A stretch of DNA of 64,000 bases from Marsupella aquatica (GCA_973895155.1 OZ316897.1:11183832-11247831), one strand, 5' to 3'; positions 267-57,684 are shown, counted from the first letter of the stretch. Notes: generated from the letters alone by a model not told the origin. Numbers and translations: made by a program.

Positions 267-2861
267 AGGAAGCCCAGAGCACTTGAGTTCAATCATAAGA
301 TCACAAGGAAAGCACTTTGGGTGGATGTATGGTCAACTCCAGCATGGGTGAAGGCAAGGGCGAATTTAATCACTAAATGCAGATTGCAATCTCGTGTTAG
401 TTATGGCACGAGAGATTGGTCTGAAGTCACTGCACAAGGGAATGGCAGTCGGCACATGCATGATGCTGGTTCCACAAGTGAAACAATGGCTGTTTTGAAG
501 GATCTTCTACAACGAGGCATTACTATAGACTCGTACACATATATTGAAGTTCTGCAAATGTGCTCGAAACACAAAAACCTTTTAGCGGCCACGCAGGTGC
601 ATGACCACATCATCCAGAGTCAAATGGATAAGAATCTATATGTGGCGGTAACCCTTCTGAATGTATATATCAAATGTGGGGCATTGTTGGATGCACGTCG
701 AGTTTTTGATCAAATTGAGGAGAAGAGTGTTATTACTTGGACCAACATGATCGTAGGATATGCCAGGAGTGGTCATTCTGAATCTGCACTAGAACTTTTC
801 AATCAAATGCGCCAAGAAGGTGTGCAGCCTAATGAGATCACATATCTGAGCATCCTCAAGGCATGTGCCAACCCATTAGCTCTAAAATTGGGAAAGGAAG
901 CTCACTTGTATATTCGACATGCTGGCTTTGAGTCAGATGTGCGTGTGGGTTCTGCCCTCCTACAGATGTATGCAAGATGTGGGTGCATCACCGAGGCAAG
1001 GAAAGTTTTTGAACAATTGACCAATCGAAATGTCATTACTTGGACTGTTATGATTCGAGCATATGCAGAACGTGGTCATAGTGTGGAAGCATATCGACTG
1101 TTTCTCCAGATGAGACGGGAAGGCTTCGAACCAGATGCAATCACTTATAGGAGCATCCTGAATGCATCTGGAAGTGCAGGGGCTTTGGACTGGGTGAGGG
1201 AGGTTCACGGCCATGCTAGCAAGGGACTGGACTCAGATTTGCGTGTGGGCAATGCACTGGTTCACATGTATGCAAAAAGTGGCAGTATAGATGATGCCAG
1301 ACTGGCTTTTGACAAAATGCAGGAACGCGACGTAGTCACATGGAATGTGATGATCGGTGGACTTGCACAACATGGATGTGGGCATGAAGCATATCAACTG
1401 TTTCTCCAAATGAGACGTGAGGGCTTCCAACCAGATGCATTCACTTACTCTAGTATTCTCAATGCATTTGCCAGTGAGGGGGCTTTGGAATGGGTGAAGG
1501 AAGTTCATGGCCACGCTAGCAAGGCGGGACTGGAGACAGATTTGCGTGTAGGCAATGCACTGGTTCACATGTATGCGCAGAATGGCATCATAGACGACGC
1601 CCGACTGGTTTTTGACAGAATGAACAGACGCGATGTAGTCACATGGAATGTAATGATCGGTGGACTTGCACAACAGGGATGTGGGAATGAAGCATATCAA
1701 CTGTTTCTCCAGATGCGACGGGAAGGCTTCGAACCAGATGCAATCACGTACATGAGCATCCTGGATGCATCTGCAAGTGCGGGGGCTTTGGAGTGGGTGA
1801 AGGAGGTTCACGGCCATGCTAGAAAAGTAGGACTGGAATCAGATTTGCGTGTGGGCAGTGCACTAGTTCACATGTATGCAGAGAGTGGCTGTATAGACGA
1901 CGCCCGTCTTGTTTTTGACAGAATGGAGAAACGCGATGTAGTTACATGGAATGTAATGATCGGTGGACTTGCACAACATGGATGTGGGAATGAAGCCCTG
2001 GAACTATTCAGGAAAATGATCGCAGACGGTGTGAAGCCAAGCAGTCATTCATTCAAGGCAGTGTTGTCAGCCTGTTGTCACGGGGGCCTTGTTGATGATG
2101 GCCGCAGACTCTTTTCAGCTATGACGCAAGATTTTGGTATCGAGCCTCACATTGTGCATTATACCTGCATGGTGGATCTTCTTGGGCGGGCTGGGTTATT
2201 GGAGGAAGCAAAGCGCTTCATTAGTGATATGGCAGTTGAACCTGATGCAATAACTTGGACAGCCTTGCTTGGCGCTTGTAGAACTTACGGTAATGTGGAG
2301 TTGGGCGAACTTGCCGCTAACGAGATTTTCAAGTTGGAACCCAGTAAGGCCTCTCCGTATGTGCTTCTCTCCAACATATATGCTGCAGCTCGCAAATGGG
2401 AGAAAGTTTCATTGGTGCGCACTATGATGCAAAAGAGAGGTGTGCGGAAGGAGCCAGGGCGTAGCTGGATTGAAGTTGATAAGAAGATTCATAAATTTGT
2501 TTCAGGGGATACATCTCACCCAGAAGCGAAGACGATATATACTGAGCTCAACAAGTTGAATGAAATACTTAAGGCTGAAGGCTACATTCCGGATACCCGG
2601 CTTGTATTGCATGATGTCAATGAAAAGGATAAAGAACTAGCTCTTTGCTCTCATAGTGAGAAGTTGGCCATTGCTTACGCACTAATTCACATACCTCGGG
2701 AAGAACCAATTCGTGTATATAAAAACCTTCGGGTGTGTGCAGATTGCCACACAGCGACCAAGTTTATCTCTCAGGTGACTGGACGCGAGATTATAGCGAG
2801 GGATGCAAGTCGCTTTCACCATTTTAAAGATGGCATGTGTTCTTGTGGAGATTACTGGTGA
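267..2861 (+). CDS. PLS-class pentatricopeptide repeat protein with E1/E2 and DYW cytidine-deaminase domain (organellar C-to-U RNA editing factor)
   Basis: The 846-aa ORF is made of alternating P/L/S PPR motifs. It has a PG box (PGRSWIEV), the HSEKLA and CADCH zinc-binding motifs, and the terminus RFHHFKDGMCSCGDYW. The frame stays open back to an acceptor-like tgacag at 266. A donor (gag|gtaggc) at 70/71 follows an open in-phase stretch at 2-70, so the true start is probably upstream of the window. Confidence 0.96.
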   Translation, partial: RKPRALEFNHKITRKALWVDVWSTPAWVKARANLITKCRLQSRVSYGTRDWSEVTAQGNGSRHMHDAGSTSETMAVLKDLLQRGITIDSYTYIEVLQMCSKHKNLLAATQVHDHIIQSQMDKNLYVAVTLLNVYIKCGALLDARRVFDQIEEKSVITWTNMIVGYARSGHSESALELFNQMRQEGVQPNEITYLSILKACANPLALKLGKEAHLYIRHAGFESDVRVGSALLQMYARCGCITEARKVFEQLTNRNVITWTVMIRAYAERGHSVEAYRLFLQMRREGFEPDAITYRSILNASGSAGALDWVREVHGHASKGLDSDLRVGNALVHMYAKSGSIDDARLAFDKMQERDVVTWNVMIGGLAQHGCGHEAYQLFLQMRREGFQPDAFTYSSILNAFASEGALEWVKEVHGHASKAGLETDLRVGNALVHMYAQNGIIDDARLVFDRMNRRDVVTWNVMIGGLAQQGCGNEAYQLFLQMRREGFEPDAITYMSILDASASAGALEWVKEVHGHARKVGLESDLRVGSALVHMYAESGCIDDARLVFDRMEKRDVVTWNVMIGGLAQHGCGNEALELFRKMIADGVKPSSHSFKAVLSACCHGGLVDDGRRLFSAMTQDFGIEPHIVHYTCMVDLLGRAGLLEEAKRFISDMAVEPDAITWTALLGACRTYGNVELGELAANEIFKLEPSKASPYVLLSNIYAAARKWEKVSLVRTMMQKRGVRKEPGRSWIEVDKKIHKFVSGDTSHPEAKTIYTELNKLNEILKAEGYIPDTRLVLHDVNEKDKELALCSHSEKLAIAYALIHIPREEPIRVYKNLRVCADCHTATKFISQVTGREIIARDASRFHHFKDGMCSCGDYW

Positions 2862-32978: not shown

Positions 32979-35900
32979 TCAGCGATAGAGAACAAGGTCC
33001 GGATTCGCGTCCATTTTCTTCTCCTCCTGAGCATGCCTCTGAAACATAACTCGGGTCTGCTTCAGATGCTCACTAAACACTCGTTGTCGCTTCCTTGCTG
33101 CATTGTATTCTGAAAGCTGCCTCTTCGTCACAACTTTGAAGTTTTCTGAAGAGAGTGCATTACCATCCAGGACATCGCCCATCAAATCTGATTTCCTAAG
33201 AAGGTCAGGTTCTTGTTGACCTTGGGTCCTGACAACCCACGGTCTTCCTCTGGCGGAAACAATAATACATCTGGCCAGAACACCTGCCACAGTATCTGCT
33301 GTTTCTTTGTCCGAAAAAATCACATATCCCGTTGAGCTATTCAATTCTGGATGGGGGGGAGGAATCGTTACAGACTGAATCTTCTCTTCATTGCAGAACT
33401 TCAGAAGCTGCTCCCTCAAGTCGGATTCTGGCACACTTACCTCCAAGTTATCAATCATTAAGATGCATCCAGACCTTCCTAGGACATTCTTGGTGAAAGC
33501 AGACCTCCTATTTCTGGCCTGGTTGTTTCGTAAATGGACATTCCAGCCTTCCTGCTGATCATCTGGTAAGGCCTGATCAGATCCTGAGAGGTTGTCGCTA
33601 TTGGAATATTCCCTCGTGGATGATAAGGGTGGCATGCTGCTGCCGGCTATGACACCATCATCTTCTTCTTCGTCTGATAAGCAGATCACATTGTCTAAGG
33701 CTGAACCGAGCCCTGTGCGGGACTTAGCATTCACCAGCTCTTGTTTATTGCCGGAGCGTGCCGTAGAACTTGAATGCATTGCAAATTTCAAGTCGTCTTC
33801 AACCTTTGGTTGAACAGATGGGTCCTTCTTTGGTTCTCCGAAACGTTCATCAACTGATCCCGGAAGCTCCTCCTCCCGTCCATTGTCACATCCTTTCTCC
33901 CTTGTGACAGAAACATGAAACAACTTCGCATCCTTTCGTTCTGAAGGGGCACAGTCTGTGGGACCCGATGGGGGAGCCTCAGGTTTAGGTTCAGCAGGCT
34001 TGCATGTCGTCGTCATTGCCTCGGATTTGCCACCAGAATCTAAAAGCTCCTCTTCGTAATTAGGTGAATATGAAGTCACCTTGGCTCCAGTAGGAAATGA
34101 TCTGCTGAGAGAAAGACCCTCGACAATAGACGCAGATTCATCTAATTCCATATCGAATTCGACTGTAATTCGTACTTTCTTCGACCGAAGCCCATCGCTT
34201 TTCGCAGCTACAATTTGTATCTTCTTCTGTGTTTTGTGAGCCTCCGATCTCACCTTATTTTCAACAGTTGCAGCTATACCGGCCCTCTCCTGCTTTAACA
34301 TATCAGCTTTCGCCTCCCACTCTGTCATATCAAAGACAGACCTCACAGTTAGAAGTCTATCGATCCCAAATCTGGAAGCTCACAAAAATGACATCACCAG
34401 AATGTCAGCTCATACAAACCTTTAATATCCAAATCACTCGGAAGCTTGGAAAACCCATCATTTCCGCCACTTTCATCTGCAAAAAATCAATGTCATGAGC
34501 AGCTTGTAAAGCAAACAAAAGCACCATACAGGGCAAGAAAGACATTCATTCCGCAATTTGCGTACACGATGGCAATGCTGCAATAAAAAACTAATGCGCT
34601 AGGAGTATTGGCACCCGTTGATTGCAGTACTCCTTGCCGCCGGTGTGCGCATGCCAACGAATGTCTTCCGATAGAATCTTAGAGATAAACAGCTACGTGA
34701 CTGACAGAAAAGTAGGATATTCAATACGAACACGATAAGAACAGAAACGACCAAATTCCATCAGTGACCCAGAAATTGGAATGGCAGGGGATACAGAAGG
34801 CCGCCTAACTGACTTCACCCAATAAAGTTAAATAAGACACGAGTTTGAAGGCTTCTTGTCAGGATGCTCGTACTTATTTTCCCCGAACCTCTGAAACAAT
34901 TAACCATGAGGTTCAGGGGTAAGGAAAGGGTCGAGGAAGCTAGAAGAACCAAGGCAACGGTTGCTAACAAGAACACATTGATATTACCCCTTAAGTGAAA
35001 GGCATGATGAAGGTAGAGTAGTTGCAATTTAGAAATGGACCAAGAAAACAGAAACTTAGAACGGAAAACAAAAGAAAAGATAAGATACGATAAGACAAGA
35101 AACAAATAAAGGAATCAACGTTGATACACAATCGTCGCACACGTCTTTACGAGTTCCCTATACCCTAGATTGTTTAAGATTGCATAGTTTTTGGAGGCCA
35201 TCCCTCCTGGACACATGCTAGCTATCATCCGATAATCTCCACACTAGAATTCTCGGCTACTGACTTTGTAGTCTGGCACAAAATCTGAAGAAAGGGCAGG
35301 TAACTGATTTTTAGTCTCAAGAACTTCTTTTATACGATTCACCCAAGAGGTCACCCTTTGTACAATACCTGGCGACTTGCTGCTCAAATCATAGTCTTCA
35401 AGAAAGTCAGCCTTACCCTTAACATCCTCCTCCTTCACCTGGACTTCGGAGGGCCTCCTGCCCAAGTGACGTTCTTCAAGAAATTTAGCCTTAGCCTTGA
35501 CATCCTCCTCCTTCGCCTGGACTTGGGAGGGCCTGCTCAAGTGATGTTCTTCTAGAGGATCAGCCTTAGCCTTGACAGTTTCCTTCTTCACTGGAAGTTC
35601 GCATTCTTCTTCCTCAGTAAGGTCAATAAAAACCTTCGTTTTTAGACGACGGTCTTCAACTGGCTTAGCATTTGGTGAGACTGTGGGCTTCTGCTGTATC
35701 CGACTATAGCCGACTCTGTCCAAAGACTTCGCATCCGTAGAAACTTTCTGTTGCTGTTCCTCCTCTTTGCAGACTCTTCCCGAAGACTTCGTTCCAAATA
35801 TACGTTCTCGTTGTTCGCTGAGATCTAAAGGAAAGGATTCTTCGCTCTCCGCTTGACCTCTCATTTTCTTCGTTGGTCTATTACTGCCACCACCAGCAGG

Positions 35901-37676
35901 AGAGGAAAGTGGAGGGACATCCTGTGTAGTCTCTACTGCCTGTTTTGACTGCTTCAAGAGCTCAACGCTCATTGTTTTCATTGGTGCACTACTGTCGGCA
36001 GCAGCAGGAGAGCAACGAGAAAGAACATCCTGTGTAGTCTCTACTGCCTGTTTTGACTGCTTCAAGTGATCAACGCTCCTTCCTTTTATTCGTTTATCCG
36101 TGTCAGGAGCAGCGAGAGAGGAAAGTGTAGGAGTATCCTGTGTTGCCTCGACTGCCTGATTCGACTGCTTCAAGTGATTAACGCCCGCGCAAATCTCTGC
36201 CGTGATCTCTCTAATGAGCTTAGCAGAATGAGATGCCAAAGAATTATCTCTAATCAGCTCAGCAGAACCAGATGACAAAGATGGAACATCCCGACATTCA
36301 CTGTGTGCCGAGGCAGTACCAGCATGGCGGTCATCAACCACCAATTCTGACTGATCTAAAGGGTCCTTGACCTGACTTACATCAGTGTTCGTGGGTTTCA
36401 ATCTCTTAAGACGACGAGTATATACCTGCTCTTGCGAAGAAACTGTGTCATCGTCAGTATCACCTTTGCTTCTCCTCACTCCGCGTCCACTACTGCTTGG
36501 TCCTTCTTTCTCCTGATCCATGCCTCTCCCATCGCCACTGGCGTGGCGCAACATGTCCACTACGAGAGGATGGGTTTCTACGTTTTTGGTTGAGAGCAAA
36601 CAAATCTCCGCACATGTCAAATTTCTCTCGGTTAGACCCTTGGCAGGACCATCTCGCCAGGTAACAGTAAACGAGCAGGTGCAGGTCTCACCCTCATCTC
36701 CAAACGTGTGCGGCCGTTTCCTCATCTGGCATCACAATAAACGATAAATTTAAAATCACACAGCGTCACACAGGCTCAACTTCAAATGCAAAGACGTGCC
36801 GAGCAGAAGAATCGTTTCCATAGCCCAGCTCCCAGAGCCAAAAAGGCGACCCAGCTGCCGTTTACAGCTTAGACGGTAAGATGCACCGCGATGCGGTATA
36901 TTCAAATGACATCAACAATTCCACCTGTAGAAAGGGAGACACAAAATCCCCTAAGTCTTAAAACCTTCCCGACAAGAGGAAAGGTTGAGTACTTGTCAGT
37001 GAAGACGTTACAGAGGGAGCCAAGGGAGGTATATAATCGGATGCTTGCCCAACCACACCACGTCCAAGAGATTTAATCAAAAGCTACAGCCGATGGACTG
37101 AACATAACCATCTCTCTCCAAGATGAAAGCACAGCGACTCCAGAAAGAATGTCCGGGAGCTGCTAAGACAAGCTTTTGGTCCTTTCGTAAAGGCTTTCTA
37201 TTCAGCGTCAAACAATACTAAACCGTGGACATAAGATAGCGATTTACAAGACAATTTATTCTTCTGCAGCCTAGAGGTAAATTTACAACCTCTATCACGA
37301 CCGCATCATGCCAACCATCCTTATCCTGGGCCCTTCTCAGCGCGCACACGATTTTGTTCACTTTAACAATGTCGCATTCCTCATCTTGCAATTGTTCTGA
37401 AACCACCCTGATGTGCTTATTAATCGGGTTTAAGCTCTTGATTTTCTCCGCATCCCAGTGCTCGTCTTCGTCAACTGAAAAACCATCGAAGTGGACATTC
37501 GTAGTGCCATCCTCCCTCAAGCTCAGCTCTGCGGCGAACCAAGCTCCATCGGATAGAATTTCCAGCTTGTCATCCCTCCCTGCGGATTCCGTTGCAACGT
37601 TTGCTTGGTCTCCTACCACCGCCTGCCCATCATTCGCGTTCTCCGGGTTCGGTGGCCGCCATATCATTTTGGCCAT
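32979..37676 (-). CDS. SAWADEE-domain protein with long repetitive linker and C-terminal ASI1-like RRM (~1085-1108 aa)
   Basis: Exon 1 is 37676-37290 and exon 2 is 36725-35265. A short linking exon (34890-34874 or 34700-34615, both phase-compatible) leads to the last exon 34371-32979. SAWADEE: LEILSDGAWF..VHFDGFSVDEDEHW..SEQLQDEEC..VCA..HDAVVIE-MRKRPH..CTCSFTVTWRDGP..EICLL. RRM: ILMIDNL..STGYVIFSDKETA..IIVSARGRPWVV. Joining the two halves into one gene is an inference. Confidence 0.8.
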
Positions 37677-54860: not shown

Positions 54861-57684
54861 CTACTGATCGTTATCATTAAACTCATCAAAGCTAGCCCAG
54901 GGCACGCCCCCAGAGTGAAATGAGGGTGAAAAACGCATGGACTGCTGCTCTACTGTCTTGATCTTCTCATGATCTTCATCAGTCAAAGTGAAGTCCCAAA
55001 TGCTCATGTTCTCGATCAGTCTCTCTTCACGGTAGCTCCTTGGAATGGAAATAACCCCCAACTCATGTATCCACCGAAGGACAATCTGCATGCCACAATT
55101 CCAAGCACGTATCTTCAGTTGCTGCCAGTTTTCCAGCTTTGTTTTGAGAGATGGGGACAAAATCAAATAAACACAGCTGTACTCAGAACTGAGCGAATCT
55201 GGGATGGGTTCCCAAAACTGTTGAAACTATGTCTAGGGCTGCACAAAAGAGTATAACCTGTCAAGAGTAATTTCACCGAAAGGATCTTCCCAAGGGATTG
55301 CTAATCAGCACCTCTCGGTTTTGTGGGTGGGGGGACGGGGGGATTGGTCTCTCATCACAACAACAGTGTCCTAGCCAAGCTGAAGCCATACATTCTATAA
55401 CTTAGAAGCAATGCAAACCTACTCTTTACCTGAGGAACAGTCTTTTGATGTTCGAGAGCAATTTGTATGAGAATCGGATTGTTTAACACATTCATTGAAC
55501 CGTACAATGATCCTGGTGCTCCCAATGGTGACCATGCACTCACTTGTATCCCGTTCTTCTGACAGAAGGCCCTCAACTTATGTTGCTGCCATTCCGGGTG
55601 GAGCTCTATCTGCAAAAATCAAGCACTCATTAACATTGTCCAGCAAATTGTGAACACTCGATCTGTCTTGCATTTAAGCGGCCAAGGAAGTCAATCCTTT
55701 CTAATGAGCACGTGAATACAGTCAGGCTTCCCAAAAACCCAGAGATATATTTTCAGAGTTTTTTTGCAGTTGAAGCAGTGTAGGGTTGTGCACTGACCAC
55801 GGAATATGGTTGCAAAACAACAAGATGAGATGTACCTTCATATCATCAGAGCTACAGTTCCTCACCCTGAATGTACTGAAAGAATGGTATACCTGATTAA
55901 CAGCAGGGACTATCTTTGCATGAGGTAACAGTTCCTGCAACATTTTGACACAAAAATTACTGACACCAATAGATTTTGTCAAACCCAATGCCACCAACTT
56001 CTCCATTTCCTCCCAAGTACCTTTCAGGTCCAATACGAGCCGATCATCAAGGTTTGATTTAAGAAAACTGGTCCCCTTCTTCAATCTGAGAGGCCAATGA
56101 ATCAAGAACATGTCCACGTATTCCACCTGCAGGTTGCTACACACCGATTTCGCGTAGTGAATACCTATTACATTGATCAAATCCTCCCATGAAAGCTTAT
56201 TGCTCGTATTACATGATATGAATCAAATGACTGTAGTGTTCGGATTAAGACGGGTCTGAAGTTCAAATACCAATGAAATGTCCCAACCTTTGCAACTATC
56301 TATTGCTTATTGAACATGCTCGAAGCCCACCAGCTCACCTCAAACTTCTTTTTATAGCAGGAAGAACTTCGTCAATGTGAAGGCTTTCTGGTGCAATCTT
56401 TGTGGTCAAGTACACCTCTTCACGCTTCACAAGGCCAGTTGCAAAGGCTTCCTGTAAGGCATTCCCAATAGCCACTTCCGTAGTGTAAGCTTCTGCCGTA
56501 TCAATATGCCTGTATCCAATCTACAACAAGGGCAACATTATTAGAAATGTTAAGGTTCTGAAGTTGTAATCCCCAGCTTGGAAATGAAACAAAGCTTTTG
56601 TATATGGTCAACAGCATGAACGTTTGGTATCTTTGCTGCATTGATTCAAAACAAAGGGTACATCTAATGAATGCGCACATAACAGTAAAACCAGAGGACT
56701 AAGTACTTCATCATCCTAAAAGCTGTCCGTGCTCAGTCGGAATATCTGATTGAAGTGGTGACCAAGATACTCCAGCTCAACTAAACAACTACGGCGAAAC
56801 TGAGCAGAGAAGTGGGTTCTTTGGCAATTTGATGCACATGGCTCACGACGGAGTGTTAGAAACAGAATAAAAGATTCTAGGCAGATGTTATTTTAGGAAC
56901 AAATCTATGGCAATTAGGGAAGTAGACGGTCAAAGTAATCCCCAATTTCGACCTTGTCATATTGACGATGATGGTACCAACTCATTTTAAGAGACATGGT
57001 GATTCCAGAATTAATATGATTGAGACTCATTCTTCAAACGCTACATTCCGTGCGTGACATCGTCGATGATTTTCCATAATACTTGGGAGAGTTCCCGAGG
57101 ATTGGAATAGTGACCTACATGGTGACCTACATGTGTTAGTACTCTGCGATACCGAACTGTAAACGTACAAACGACAGAAGCATAATGAGAACGAAGACGA
57201 TGAAGAAGAGAGATATCGTCAGTCTACTGGATCCCCACTCGTGATTTTCGTTCGGATTGATTATAATACTGCCCAACATTGGTAGGGGATCAATACTGTT
57301 TCAATCTTGCAAATCACAATCACCGTCGAAATTTGCTGCCGACAACCCTCAACGTTCCATTTCACAAGGGCAACCAAAGAAAACATTCAAGATAACATCC
57401 GAGCATAACCCTCAAATTTTCACCGAACCAACCCAGAATTGGAAGTGGGGTCAGTACCTTCGAAGATTCCTTGAGACACAATTCACGGTGCTGATTCCTT
57501 GAGACACTAATGAAGGAAGAAGTGAGAGAAGGCCGTGGCGATTGGTGGACGGGAATATTACCTCGAGAGCCTTTAGGACCACGGGACTTAACGATTCCGT
57601 GGGGAGGCCAACCCCCAAACCAACCGCAGGACTTGAAGTTGAGTCATTGAGCTTGAATGTCGGCACCTCCACCTTCTTCCCCAT
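54861..57684 (-). CDS. Aldo-keto reductase (AKR4-like, NADPH-dependent), 5 exons, 317 aa
   Basis: Exons 57684-57562, 56520-56339, 56136-55893, 55609-55430 and 55085-54861 are in phase (954 nt). The catalytic tetrad is intact (GYRHIDTAEAY, TTK, LIHWP). Other motifs: KSIGVSNF, PAVNQIELHP, AWSPLG, IPRS. Confidence 0.95.

Follow-up and report, generated by a model that had tools for sequence, protein, structure and literature searches.

A predicted Marsupella aquatica gene joining a SAWADEE domain to a divergent RRM fold

Results

Gene structure

The window is a stretch of 64,000 nt of Marsupella aquatica DNA, and positions are counted from its first letter. The three unannotated ORFs claimed at 32979-37676 by the first-pass annotation were found at exactly those positions on the minus strand: 37218-37676 (152 aa), 35244-36725 (493 aa) and 32979-34346 (455 aa). 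Judged from the sequence, they are parts of one predicted three-exon nuclear protein-coding gene of ~1,043-1,048 codons. The locus is contained in four runs, all as DNA contigs, and the gene model was drawn from the genomic sequence and from relatives of the protein. Its parts are as follows (a slash marks the splice point).

37287..37676, minus strand: exon 1, 130 codons, start codon and the first three quarters of SAWADEE
36726..37286, minus strand: intron 1, 561 nt, GT..AG, phase 0, donor GTT/GTAAAT, acceptor ..GCCAG/ATG
35369..36725, minus strand: exon 2, the end of SAWADEE, then a low-complexity linker
34379..35368, minus strand: intron 2, 990 nt, predicted (preferred model; alternative 35376-34372)
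32979..34378, minus strand: exon 3, what remains of the linker, the C-terminal module and the TGA stop (32979-32981)

The annotated protein CAM6098011.1 of Calypogeia fissa (P0001, 930 aa) is collinear with all three ORFs. Exon 1 corresponds to its residues 1-131 and exon 3 to residues 476-929 (55% identity), and homology breaks off and restarts exactly at in-frame canonical splice sites. Read-through of intron 1 meets a stop codon 22 codons past the donor. The boundaries of intron 2 are ambiguous, as two in-frame models fit; the 3' end of exon 2 is most likely 35369 (CAG/GTATTG, phase 1), with 35377 as the alternative, and P0001 homology in exon 2 stops at LSSKSP, exactly at the donor. When the gene was compared with that of a related organism (B), exon indels were triplets or summed to a triplet, whereas those in introns and UTRs were non-triplet, including 37016 and 37110 in intron 1 and 34874 and 35169 in intron 2.

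SAWADEE domain

The Pfam SAWADEE profile (PF16719) matched residues 42-133 of ORF1 at profile positions 11-92 (E 3.3e-16, 59.9 bits, cut-off 28) and residues 3-42 of ORF2 at positions 91-125. The two halves abut in the profile, since the first ends at 92 and the second begins at 91. The GT..AG phase-0 intron between them bears out the proposal that exons 1 and 2 splice in phase into a complete domain, and together these exons cover the whole domain above the curated cut-off. The unsplit domain of the orthologue P0001 scored 79.7 bits over profile positions 9-125. Orthologues begin at the same Met, directly ahead of SAWADEE. A homeodomain, said earlier to be absent, gave no Pfam match in any exon piece.

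37536-37550, minus strand: aromatic position, DGAWF (exon 1)
37479-37496, minus strand: aromatic position, VHFDGF (exon 1)
37374-37388, minus strand: first Zn-ligand Cys, QDEEC (exon 1)
37302-37316, minus strand: aromatic position, GWHDA (exon 1)
36708-36719, minus strand: His ligand, KRPH (exon 2)
36675-36689, minus strand: CxC ligands, ETCTC (exon 2)
36600-36617, minus strand: TCAEIC (exon 2, SAWADEE end)

A profile search matched the solved maize SHH2 SAWADEE (PDB 7EF2) at E 2.5e-9. The predicted Zn ligands EEC, RPH and CTC were recovered, as QDEEC, KRPH and ETCTC align with the C/H/CxC of 7EF2, and these metal-ligand positions are nearly invariant among liverwort and fern members. The domain here has a tandem Tudor-like fold with a Zn site.

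A passage of PMC12902148 that cites Law 2013 names Y140 and Y212 of SHH1 as H3K9me2-pocket residues. The candidate methyl-lysine pocket positions of the present protein are aromatic (F, F, F, W/H), the mapping of Y212 resting on spacing. The SHH1 pocket, to which F162/F165 reportedly also belong (Law 2013), was mapped tentatively onto DGAW-F, VH-F, DG-F and G-W-HDA from spacing and the SHH1 structure. The domain would thus be a putative reader of H3K9me. SHH1 Asp141, which follows the first cage Tyr, reportedly contacts unmodified K4. Its counterpart is Ala in this protein and Ser in P0001, so a histone specificity other than that of SHH1 is possible.

C-terminal module

Pfam gave no match on the last ~190 residues, with RRM_1 absent at E<=1. 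Among the relatives, RRM_1 (cut-off 20.7) reached 13.7 bits for P0001 and 16.5 bits for P0003, and the ferns gave no match. An MSA-based AlphaFold (AF2) model was obtained for the module (pLDDT 77, pTM 0.71). The parts of this C-terminal region are as follows.

33480..33554, minus strand: basic N-terminal flanking helix, pI 12 (predicted model)
33219..33473, minus strand: divergent RRM core, beta1-alpha1-beta2-beta3-alpha2-beta4, acidic, pI 5.0 (predicted model)
33444-33464, minus strand: RNP2-like ILMIDNL (RRM core)
33315-33338, minus strand: RNP1-like SSTGYVIF (RRM core)
33231-33248, minus strand: GRPWVV (RRM core)
33006..33143, minus strand: extra beta-strand (FKVV) and 37-residue basic helix, pI 10.7 (predicted; kept from liverworts to ferns)
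32982..33005, minus strand: conserved liverwort C-terminal tail NPDLVLYR, NP[DEG]LxLY[RH] in paralogues

Block-mean pLDDT was 84-91 over the RRM core (residues 31-110 of the C-terminal piece). In the numbering of this piece, strands were placed at 33-40, 62-66, 77-83 and 100-103/110-113 and helices at 46-53 and 86-97. The extra strand 142-145 and the helix 150-186, which had been noticed earlier as a helix after the RRM, were predicted with confidence within one unit; the trailing helix block had pLDDT ~73-90 to residue 180 and ~59 beyond.

The AlphaFold and Foldseek check that had been suggested for this part returned an RRM fold. The top Foldseek matches were all RRMs (probability 1.00, TM up to 0.76). 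Two VIA-align searches gave Z up to 9.1 (rmsd 2.4 Å over 78 residues), and the best 50 of 48,161 chains were all RRMs, with Z scores tied across RRM families, RNA-binding and non-RNA-binding alike. A family profile searched against PDB sequences found U1A (E 0.008) in the correct RNP register, and language-model neighbours of the module also support an RRM. The earlier reading of a divergent RRM in the last exon agrees with all of these lines, and the module is modelled as a divergent RRM fold lying between two basic helices. A SAWADEE without a homeodomain, an RRM fold and a trailing helix are thereby supported in a single reading unit, as had been proposed.

In the register of the U1A alignment, RNP2 reads L-M-I-D-N-L, with Met at the aromatic position, and RNP1 reads S-S-T-G-Y-V-I-F, with Thr at position 3 and the Tyr of position 5 kept. 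One of the three canonical RNP aromatics is therefore retained. Among the nearest structures are the RRM2 of DBHS proteins and the RRM of UPF3, both of which serve protein contacts. RNA binding by the module is putative and doubtful, because two of the three RNP aromatics are lost, the core is acidic and the nearest structures include protein-contact RRMs.

Linker and short motifs

SAWADEE and the C-terminal module are separated by ~600 residues of low-complexity, repeat-bearing linker.

35894..36184, minus strand: in-frame tandem repeat, 108 nt (36 aa) x 2.7 copies
35598..35633, minus strand: hydrophobic-plus-acidic motif VFIDLTEEEECE, candidate SUMO-interaction type (motif pattern only)
35380..35595, minus strand: in-frame tandem repeat, 78 nt (26 aa) x 2.8 copies, K/E-rich 'VKAKADxLEE' units
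33657..33689, minus strand: conserved motif VICLSDEEEDD, candidate SUMO-interaction-type or partner-docking motif

K/E-rich units lie on both sides of intron 2, of VKAKADxLEE type in exon 2 and of EAKADMLKQE type in exon 3, and in P0001 their counterparts follow one another within a single unbroken stretch. VICLSDEEEDD, whose role as a docking or SUMO-interaction motif is putative, recurs in P0001 and in two stand-alone paralogues (P0002 and P0005); its fern form is I(N/Q/E)(L/I)DSDxEED. In comparison with organism B the linker evolves almost neutrally, and the C-terminal module carries ~8 synonymous and 8 non-synonymous changes by a rough count from a partial SNP list.

Relatives

P0001 carries SAWADEE at 42-172 and the C-terminal module at 746-929. 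In six fern proteins (P0015, P0016, P0017, P0019, P0020 and P0021) a full SAWADEE (E 1e-24) is combined with this C-terminal module. The P0017 reading frame comes from a contig of a transcript assembly, and P0015 and P0016 fill 3.3-kb contigs with an uninterrupted ORF of 2.8 kb. Adiantum capillus-veneris GOP47_0020791, named 'SAWADEE domain-containing protein', shows the same full architecture. The liverwort and fern modules were aligned by hhalign with 98.5% probability (E 1.5e-15, 180 columns). Liverwort P0001 and the fern proteins thus uphold the suggestion that the gene is one of a conserved family and no one-off. The relatives retrieved included no seed-plant member. Since the whole architecture is common to liverworts and ferns, the SAWADEE-plus-RRM family probably dates to early land plants. 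Stand-alone module paralogues in Calypogeia (P0002 and P0006) indicate that the module can function without SAWADEE.

Discussion

The architecture is real, conserved and undescribed, and the function put forward for it here is putative. On balance we consider it probable that the locus is one gene whose product anchors on H3 tails through SAWADEE and contacts RNA or an RNP partner through the RRM module. It is quite improbable that two genes lie here, a SAWADEE-plus-linker gene (exons 1-2, stop at 35244) and a separate gene for a P0002-like module (exon 3), although Calypogeia does have stand-alone modules of this kind (P0002, 349 aa; P0006, 229 aa). ORF2 continues for 41 codons beyond the proposed donor to its own stop, but this tail has no counterpart in P0001, and a strong donor marks the precise point where homology ends. 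The seventh codon of ORF3 is an in-frame Met (MTEWEAK; ~34328), yet the ~290 ORF3 residues before the module are collinear with the central part of P0001 and not with the N-terminus of P0002. The locus is known from DNA contigs and P0001 is itself a gene prediction; against this, the related linker units flanking intron 2 match one continuous P0001 stretch and the fused form is present in fern transcript-derived sequence. With a single gene accepted, a further alternative concerns what its module does. It could be a pseudo-RRM for protein interaction and not for RNA, the protein being a chromatin-anchored scaffold that recruits a partner or dimerises via the RRM plus helix. DBHS RRM2-NOPS-coiled coil, UPF3 RRM-UPF2 and UHM domains act likewise, and SFPQ/NONO RRM2 and the UPF3 RRM-like domain are among the top structural neighbours. 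The core is acidic (pI 5.0) and is flanked by basic helices, which could fold back onto it, and the extra strand and helix are predicted as one unit with it (pTM 0.71). However, structural Z scores are tied between RNA-binding and non-RNA-binding RRMs. The liverwort proteins have lost all but one of the three canonical RNP aromatics, but many genuine RNA-binding RRMs lack such residues too, fern P0015 and P0016 retain Phe at the RNP2 aromatic position, and little or no variation is seen at the Tyr of RNP1 position 5 or in the 'NL' of RNP2. We regard this alternative as the less likely one, albeit with an appreciable chance.

The DBHS proteins SFPQ/NONO/PSPC1 matched through RRM2 with Z 8.8-9.2 (rmsd 3.0 Å over 81-84 residues, ~21% identity), scores that are tied with many other RRMs. 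As in the module, an extension and a long helix come after their RRM (RRM2-NOPS-coiled coil), but the helices fail to superpose, with rmsd 18-19 Å when they are included.

It is unlikely that the C-terminal RRM and helix are of the ASI1/IBM2/SG1 type, closer to it than to generic RRMs, with SAWADEE taking the place of BAH in heterochromatic-intron polyadenylation. The domain logic is shared, as each of the two chains joins a reader-type domain associated with chromatin to an RRM that is poorly recognised. For the full-length fern protein P0019, the nearest non-SAWADEE family in ESM-Atlas was an 'ANTI-SILENCING 1-like' BAH cluster (0.81, 139/256 features) and a second BAH/RRM cluster scored 0.77, but 0.81 falls short of the ESM-Atlas reliability line (0.8 is reached by one in three shuffled proteins), and no BAH set was among those listed when the C-terminal module was searched by itself. 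The RRM of the ASI1-like cluster is similarly cryptic, because Pfam RRM_1 recognises only 14% of it. An exhaustive phmmer search of 1.84 billion representatives gave 10 matches and no BAH-RRM protein, so similarity to ASI1 at the sequence level was not detected. Unlike ASI1, this protein has no BAH domain; Pfam found none in it or in any relative. The 'GRPxV' motif behind the comparison with ASI1 sits at a turn ahead of the last strand that is commonly Gly-Arg/Lys in RRMs, so this likeness to ASI1 may be generic. ASI1, a member of the ASI1-AIPP1-EDM2 complex, binds RNA as well as heterochromatic introns (PMC3880313, PMC9910501). In its complex the partner EDM2 reads H3K9me2 and the ASI1 BAH binds SUVH6, and ASI1 is represented in the PDB by OsASI1-BAH only (PMC9910501).

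SHH1 and SHH2 bind H3K9me2 (PMC12902148; PMC9170682). With SHH1/DTF1 and SHH2 the present protein shares the same SAWADEE, including the C/H/CxC and the aromatics at DGAW[YF], V[RH]F, G[FY] and [YW][YH]DA. It differs from them in lacking a homeodomain, in being four times as long, and in carrying a long linker with repeats and an RRM module at the C-terminus. The SHH partners are Pol IV/CLSY for SHH1 and SWI/SNF for SHH2.

In the one-gene reading preferred here, SAWADEE would anchor the protein on H3 tails, and methylated H3K9 is the probable mark because aromatics are kept at the mapped methyl-lysine pocket positions. The RRM module would then contact nascent RNA or an RNP partner, and an RNA-level activity (processing, silencing or anti-silencing) would thereby be tethered to marked chromatin. 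Such logic would resemble that of the BAH-RRM protein ASI1 with EDM2, or of the chromodomain-RRM protein Chp1 in fission yeast. Chp1 of Schizosaccharomyces pombe (RITS) carries a chromodomain H3K9me reader and an RRM-type domain in one chain and ties an RNA-silencing complex both to heterochromatin and to nascent transcripts. It may offer the closest functional analogy for a reader plus RRM in a single protein, in mechanism only, as it has a chromodomain where this protein has SAWADEE, belongs to a different lineage and has no sequence relationship.

Homeodomain-less SAWADEE proteins were noted by Mukherjee et al. 2009 (PMC2775110). The present gene is a member of this loosely defined, uncharacterised group, for which the literature and Pfam annotate the SAWADEE half alone and leave the C-terminal RRM module unrecognised; no paper linking SAWADEE with RRM was found. 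A bolder proposal, to which we give slightly less credence than to the ASI1-type reading itself, is that non-homeodomain SAWADEE proteins are ancient land-plant reader-plus-RNA-binder adaptors, with a cryptic RRM of common ancestry with that of ASI1/IBM2, coupling H3K9-methylated chromatin to nascent-RNA processing or silencing. If true, plants would have in them a counterpart of fission-yeast Chp1 that runs in parallel with the ASI1-EDM2 pathway, and the adaptor family would have been missed so far because domain databases see the SAWADEE half only.

Gene structure and neighbourhood

The first-pass annotation had placed three long ORFs on the minus strand at this locus, and the ORF listing bore this out. 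The ORFs and the first proposed intron are as follows.

37218-37676, minus strand, ORF1, 152 aa
37286-36726, minus strand, intron 1, donor GTT/GTAAAT, acceptor GCCAG/ATG, phase 0
35244-36725, minus strand, ORF2, 493 aa
32979-34346, minus strand, ORF3, 455 aa

The surrounding sequence is ordinary gene-rich plant nuclear DNA. The GC content of the genome is ~45%, and the following neighbours were found in the window.

321-2861, plus strand, PPR-E/E+-DYW RNA-editing-factor gene, intronless, 846 aa
5842-8667, plus strand, PRP1/PRPF6 splicing-factor gene, intronless, 941 aa
20782-21402, plus strand, F-box-like exon (E 2e-8), part of another multi-exon gene
55722-56180, minus strand, aldo/keto-reductase exon (E 8e-15), part of another multi-exon gene

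P0001, a Calypogeia fissa protein of 930 aa (CAM6098011.1), came from an exhaustive phmmer search whose query was the 194 C-terminal residues. Calypogeia as the best match is in keeping with a leafy (jungermanniid-type) liverwort, and so is the DYW gene listed above. As shown by tblastn, P0001 was collinear with all three ORFs: residues 1-131 matched 37676-37287 with 67% identity, residues 130-456 matched 36728-35433, and residues 476-929 matched 34343-33015 with 55% identity. In ORF2 the match to P0001 ran up to LSSKSP and stopped precisely where a good phase-1 donor lies (35369, CAG/GTATTG), and the similarity picked up again in the ORF3 frame directly past a phase-1 acceptor at 34378. The 41 codons of ORF2 past this donor had no counterpart in P0001. 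An alternative phase-2 pair for intron 2 (35377 and 34371) is equally in frame, and the product comprises 1,048 or 1,043 codons depending on the pair. Intron 2 is flanked by K/E-rich units, VKAKADxLEE-type before and EAKADMLKQE-type after, which are related to each other and align one after the other with a single unbroken stretch of P0001. The locus is one conserved open reading unit in which a SAWADEE domain is followed by a long linker with repeats and, in the C-terminal ~190 residues, by an RRM-fold module.

In contigs of a close relative (organism B), the proposed exons differed by indels of +3 at 33824, -3 at 33867 and -2/-1 at 36374/36377; the two proposed introns differed by -1, +1, -1 and +2, and the UTRs by -2, +1 and -1. 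This pattern in the contigs lends independent support to the three-exon gene model. All four sequencing runs containing the locus gave DNA contigs. The splice junctions are models because no RNA run with the locus was found.

Three other candidate features were rejected. A joint from 34102 to 35558 with a 26-nt side, seen in one contig, was non-canonical (TG..AG) and was put down as an artefact, either of a repeat or of the assembly. A 57-nt in-phase mini-exon at ~34422-34478 had no counterpart in P0001, and there was no phase-0 acceptor into the ORF3 frame near the ORF3 start. The consensus-perfect donor-like sequence GAG/GTAAGT at ~33441 on the minus strand lies within the RRM exon, where ORF and homology continue uninterrupted; it was regarded as chance because splicing to the sole AG nearby would remove an 'intron' of just 13 nt.

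SAWADEE domain

Each exon was analysed by itself. ORF1 residues 42-133 matched positions 11-92 of the Pfam SAWADEE profile (E 3.3e-16, 59.9 bits), and ORF2 residues 3-42 matched positions 91-125. The two pieces adjoin and therefore represent one SAWADEE domain interrupted by an intron. The earlier view that exons 1 and 2 join in phase into a complete SAWADEE domain agrees with these pieces and with the phase-0 GT..AG intron, and its claim that a homeodomain is absent was matched by the lack of any homeodomain hit in Pfam. Exon 1 as a single-sequence query against PDB gave nothing useful and a profile search was needed; the family profile matched the solved maize SHH2 SAWADEE domain (7EF2, 7EF1, 7EEZ) with E 2.5e-9. 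Equivalents of C, H and CxC in the 7EF2-type maize structure are found by alignment in QDEEC (Cys), KRPH (His) and ETCTC (CxC), the four expected Zn ligands. These positions hardly vary between the liverwort and fern members.

In a passage of PMC12902148 that cites Law et al. 2013, Y140 and Y212 of SHH1 are given as H3K9me2-pocket residues. Mapped by spacing, they would fall in the DGAWY and [YW][YH]DA motifs. Aromatic residues were retained in DGAW-F, VH-F, DG-F and G-W-HDA. We take F162 and F165 to be further pocket positions of SHH1. The Asp that follows the first Tyr in SHH1 presumably contacts unmodified K4, whereas the liverwort protein has Ala at the same position. A pocket for some form of methyl-lysine is plausible from these alignments.

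Repeat linker

Exon 2 contains two in-frame coding tandem repeats with ~80% matches, one of 108 nt in 2.7 copies (35894-36184) and one of 78 nt in 2.8 copies (35380-35595). Contig depth roughly doubled over 35858-36219 in all four runs, as would be expected of a collapsed repeat or of similar copies at other sites. A hydrophobic-acidic motif is conserved in the linker, ICLSDEEE here and I-x-[LI]-DSD-x-EED in ferns. By its pattern it looks like a candidate docking motif of the SUMO-interaction type.

Differences from organism B were listed for positions 32998-33700 in runs X3 and X4. Among the 40 of 111 differences listed, the linker (ORF3 codons 46-261) had ~3 synonymous and ~14 non-synonymous changes and the module (ORF3 codons 277-455) had 8 of each; these counts, rough as they are, therefore point to constraint on the module, not on the linker.

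Fold of the C-terminal module

The last 194 residues (33563-32982) had no match in Pfam, nor in PDB by phmmer. P0001 as a single-sequence query against PDB gave nothing useful, and only profiles gave matches. A single-sequence AlphaFold2 model was poor (pLDDT 51). It was superseded by a model from a twelve-row alignment of the module and eleven relatives (liverwort orthologue, paralogues and ferns), with a mean pLDDT of 76.8 and a pTM of 0.71.

Elements of the AlphaFold2 model (module residues)
4-28, helix
33-40, 62-66, 77-83 and 100-103/110-113, strands
46-53 and 86-97, helices between the strands, together giving RRM topology
142-145, extra strand, separated from the RRM core by a low-confidence loop
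150-186, trailing helix

All Foldseek matches to the model were RRMs (probability 1.00, TM up to 0.76). The VIA-align top 50 consisted of RRMs only, both against the Foldseek list and against 48,161 representative chains, with Z from 9.1 (rmsd 2.4 A, 78 residues) down to 7.8. In PDB the family profile matched U1A (E 0.008), SRSF2 and RBM11 with the RNP register correct, and ESM-Atlas features of the module led to RRM clusters (0.90). The RRM fold is solid as a prediction. The divergent RRM with a trailing helix, read originally from the bare sequence, was thus recovered in the model and in its all-RRM neighbours.

RNA binding by the modelled domain is uncertain, and the main rival explanation is that the RRM serves as a protein-interaction domain. 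Several features bear on the choice. In the PDB-profile register, RNP2 is L-M-I-D-N-L and RNP1 is S-S-T-G-Y-V-I-F; liverworts keep one of the canonical trio of stacking aromatics, and some ferns keep two. The RRM core is acidic (pI 5.0) and lies between two strongly basic helices (pI 12.0 and 10.7). A homodimer prediction for the module scored 0.01, which gave no answer either way.

Distribution of the family

Exhaustive phmmer with the module returned ten proteins in all. A length-band protein search with the ORF3 C-terminal region (250-796 aa) found nothing, and a metagenome scan with the liverwort module alignment (A3) found no relative. Calypogeia has module paralogues without SAWADEE, P0002 (349 aa) and P0006 (229 aa). 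A further paralogue, P0003 (Calypogeia fissa CAM6114691.1, 500 aa), is annotated as fused to a Helicase_C_2 fragment; this fusion is probably not real and would come from the merging of gene models. The following fern proteins were reached via a distant match, P0010.

P0015 and P0016, 942 and 949 aa
P0017, transcript-assembly ORF from EukProt
P0019, Adiantum capillus-veneris GOP47_0020791, named 'SAWADEE domain-containing protein'
P0020 and P0021, SAWADEE plus module

All six carry a complete N-terminal SAWADEE domain (E ~1e-24) and the same module, and Pfam recognised SAWADEE alone in them. When A3, SAWADEE-less paralogues included, was compared profile to profile with the fern protein alignment (A4), the probability was 98.5% (E 1.5e-15, 180 columns), and the match extended across the basic N-helix, RRM, extra strand and C-helix. 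The fern and liverwort matches indicate that the fused architecture is common to two lineages that split near the land-plant base. Length- and word-limited searches retrieved no seed-plant, moss or hornwort members. In the ESM Atlas, P0019 was close to three large SAWADEE-only Streptophyta clusters (0.92-0.95; 308, 163 and 54 members). Our literature search found no paper for AT4G25330, nothing joining SAWADEE with RRM, and only passing mention of 'SAWADEE domain-containing' proteins.

The domain combination is real, conserved and so far undescribed, within a known but uncharacterised homeodomain-less SAWADEE group. The first-pass annotation was sound in its observation; of its interpretation, the architecture and the conserved family not unique to one species stood, and the gene's function and the ASI1 link are hypotheses.

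Relationship to ASI1 and possible function

The module had been likened to that of the BAH+RRM proteins ASI1/IBM2/SG1. ASI1 has a BAH domain, whereas none was found in the liverwort protein, and no BAH-RRM proteins were among the exhaustive phmmer matches. The ASI1 structures in PDB cover the rice ASI1 BAH domain only (PMC9910501). VIA-align structural scores did not discriminate among RRM families. GRPWVV is located at the turn before the last RRM strand, where Gly-Arg/Lys is common in RRMs. The sole positive hint came from language-model features, by which full-length P0019 was closest, among families other than SAWADEE, to an 'ANTI-SILENCING 1-like' BAH cluster at 0.81, a lead only by the tool's own rating. 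A specific kinship of the module with ASI1 seems unlikely.

It is possible to outline how such a protein might work. The SAWADEE domain would anchor it on H3 tails, probably at methylated K9, and the module would contact either nascent RNA or a partner, which may be an RNP or a protein. An activity at the RNA level would in this way be tethered to marked chromatin, for which the closest working analogies are the ASI1-EDM2 pair and Chp1 of fission yeast. To our knowledge, SAWADEE domains have only two functional contexts, RdDM, where SHH1 acts with Pol IV, and SWI/SNF, with which SHH2 acts. A third, older branch hitherto annotated 'SAWADEE' alone carries, as modelled, a conserved RRM-fold module, the second domain missed by Pfam-level annotation. 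The family offers plant epigenetics a new concrete candidate for a link between histone mark and RNA.

Additional sequence features

A C-terminal motif, NP[DEG]LxLY[RH], is kept in liverwort members (32982-33005 here; P0002, P0007 and P0009) and absent from ferns. It is loosely reminiscent of LxLxL-type short linear motifs.

Two gene models, P0018 from Adiantum nelumboides and P0005/P0007 from liverwort-type Logan contigs, stop after the 'GR' of GRPW and continue into unrelated sequence. For P0007, the C-terminal helix appears as a small ORF of its own, and the longest contig, at 2,126 nt, is exactly as long as that of P0005. These breaks suggest a putative intron after this 'GR' in ferns and a liverwort paralogue, whereas the gene studied here has no intron at the GRPW position.
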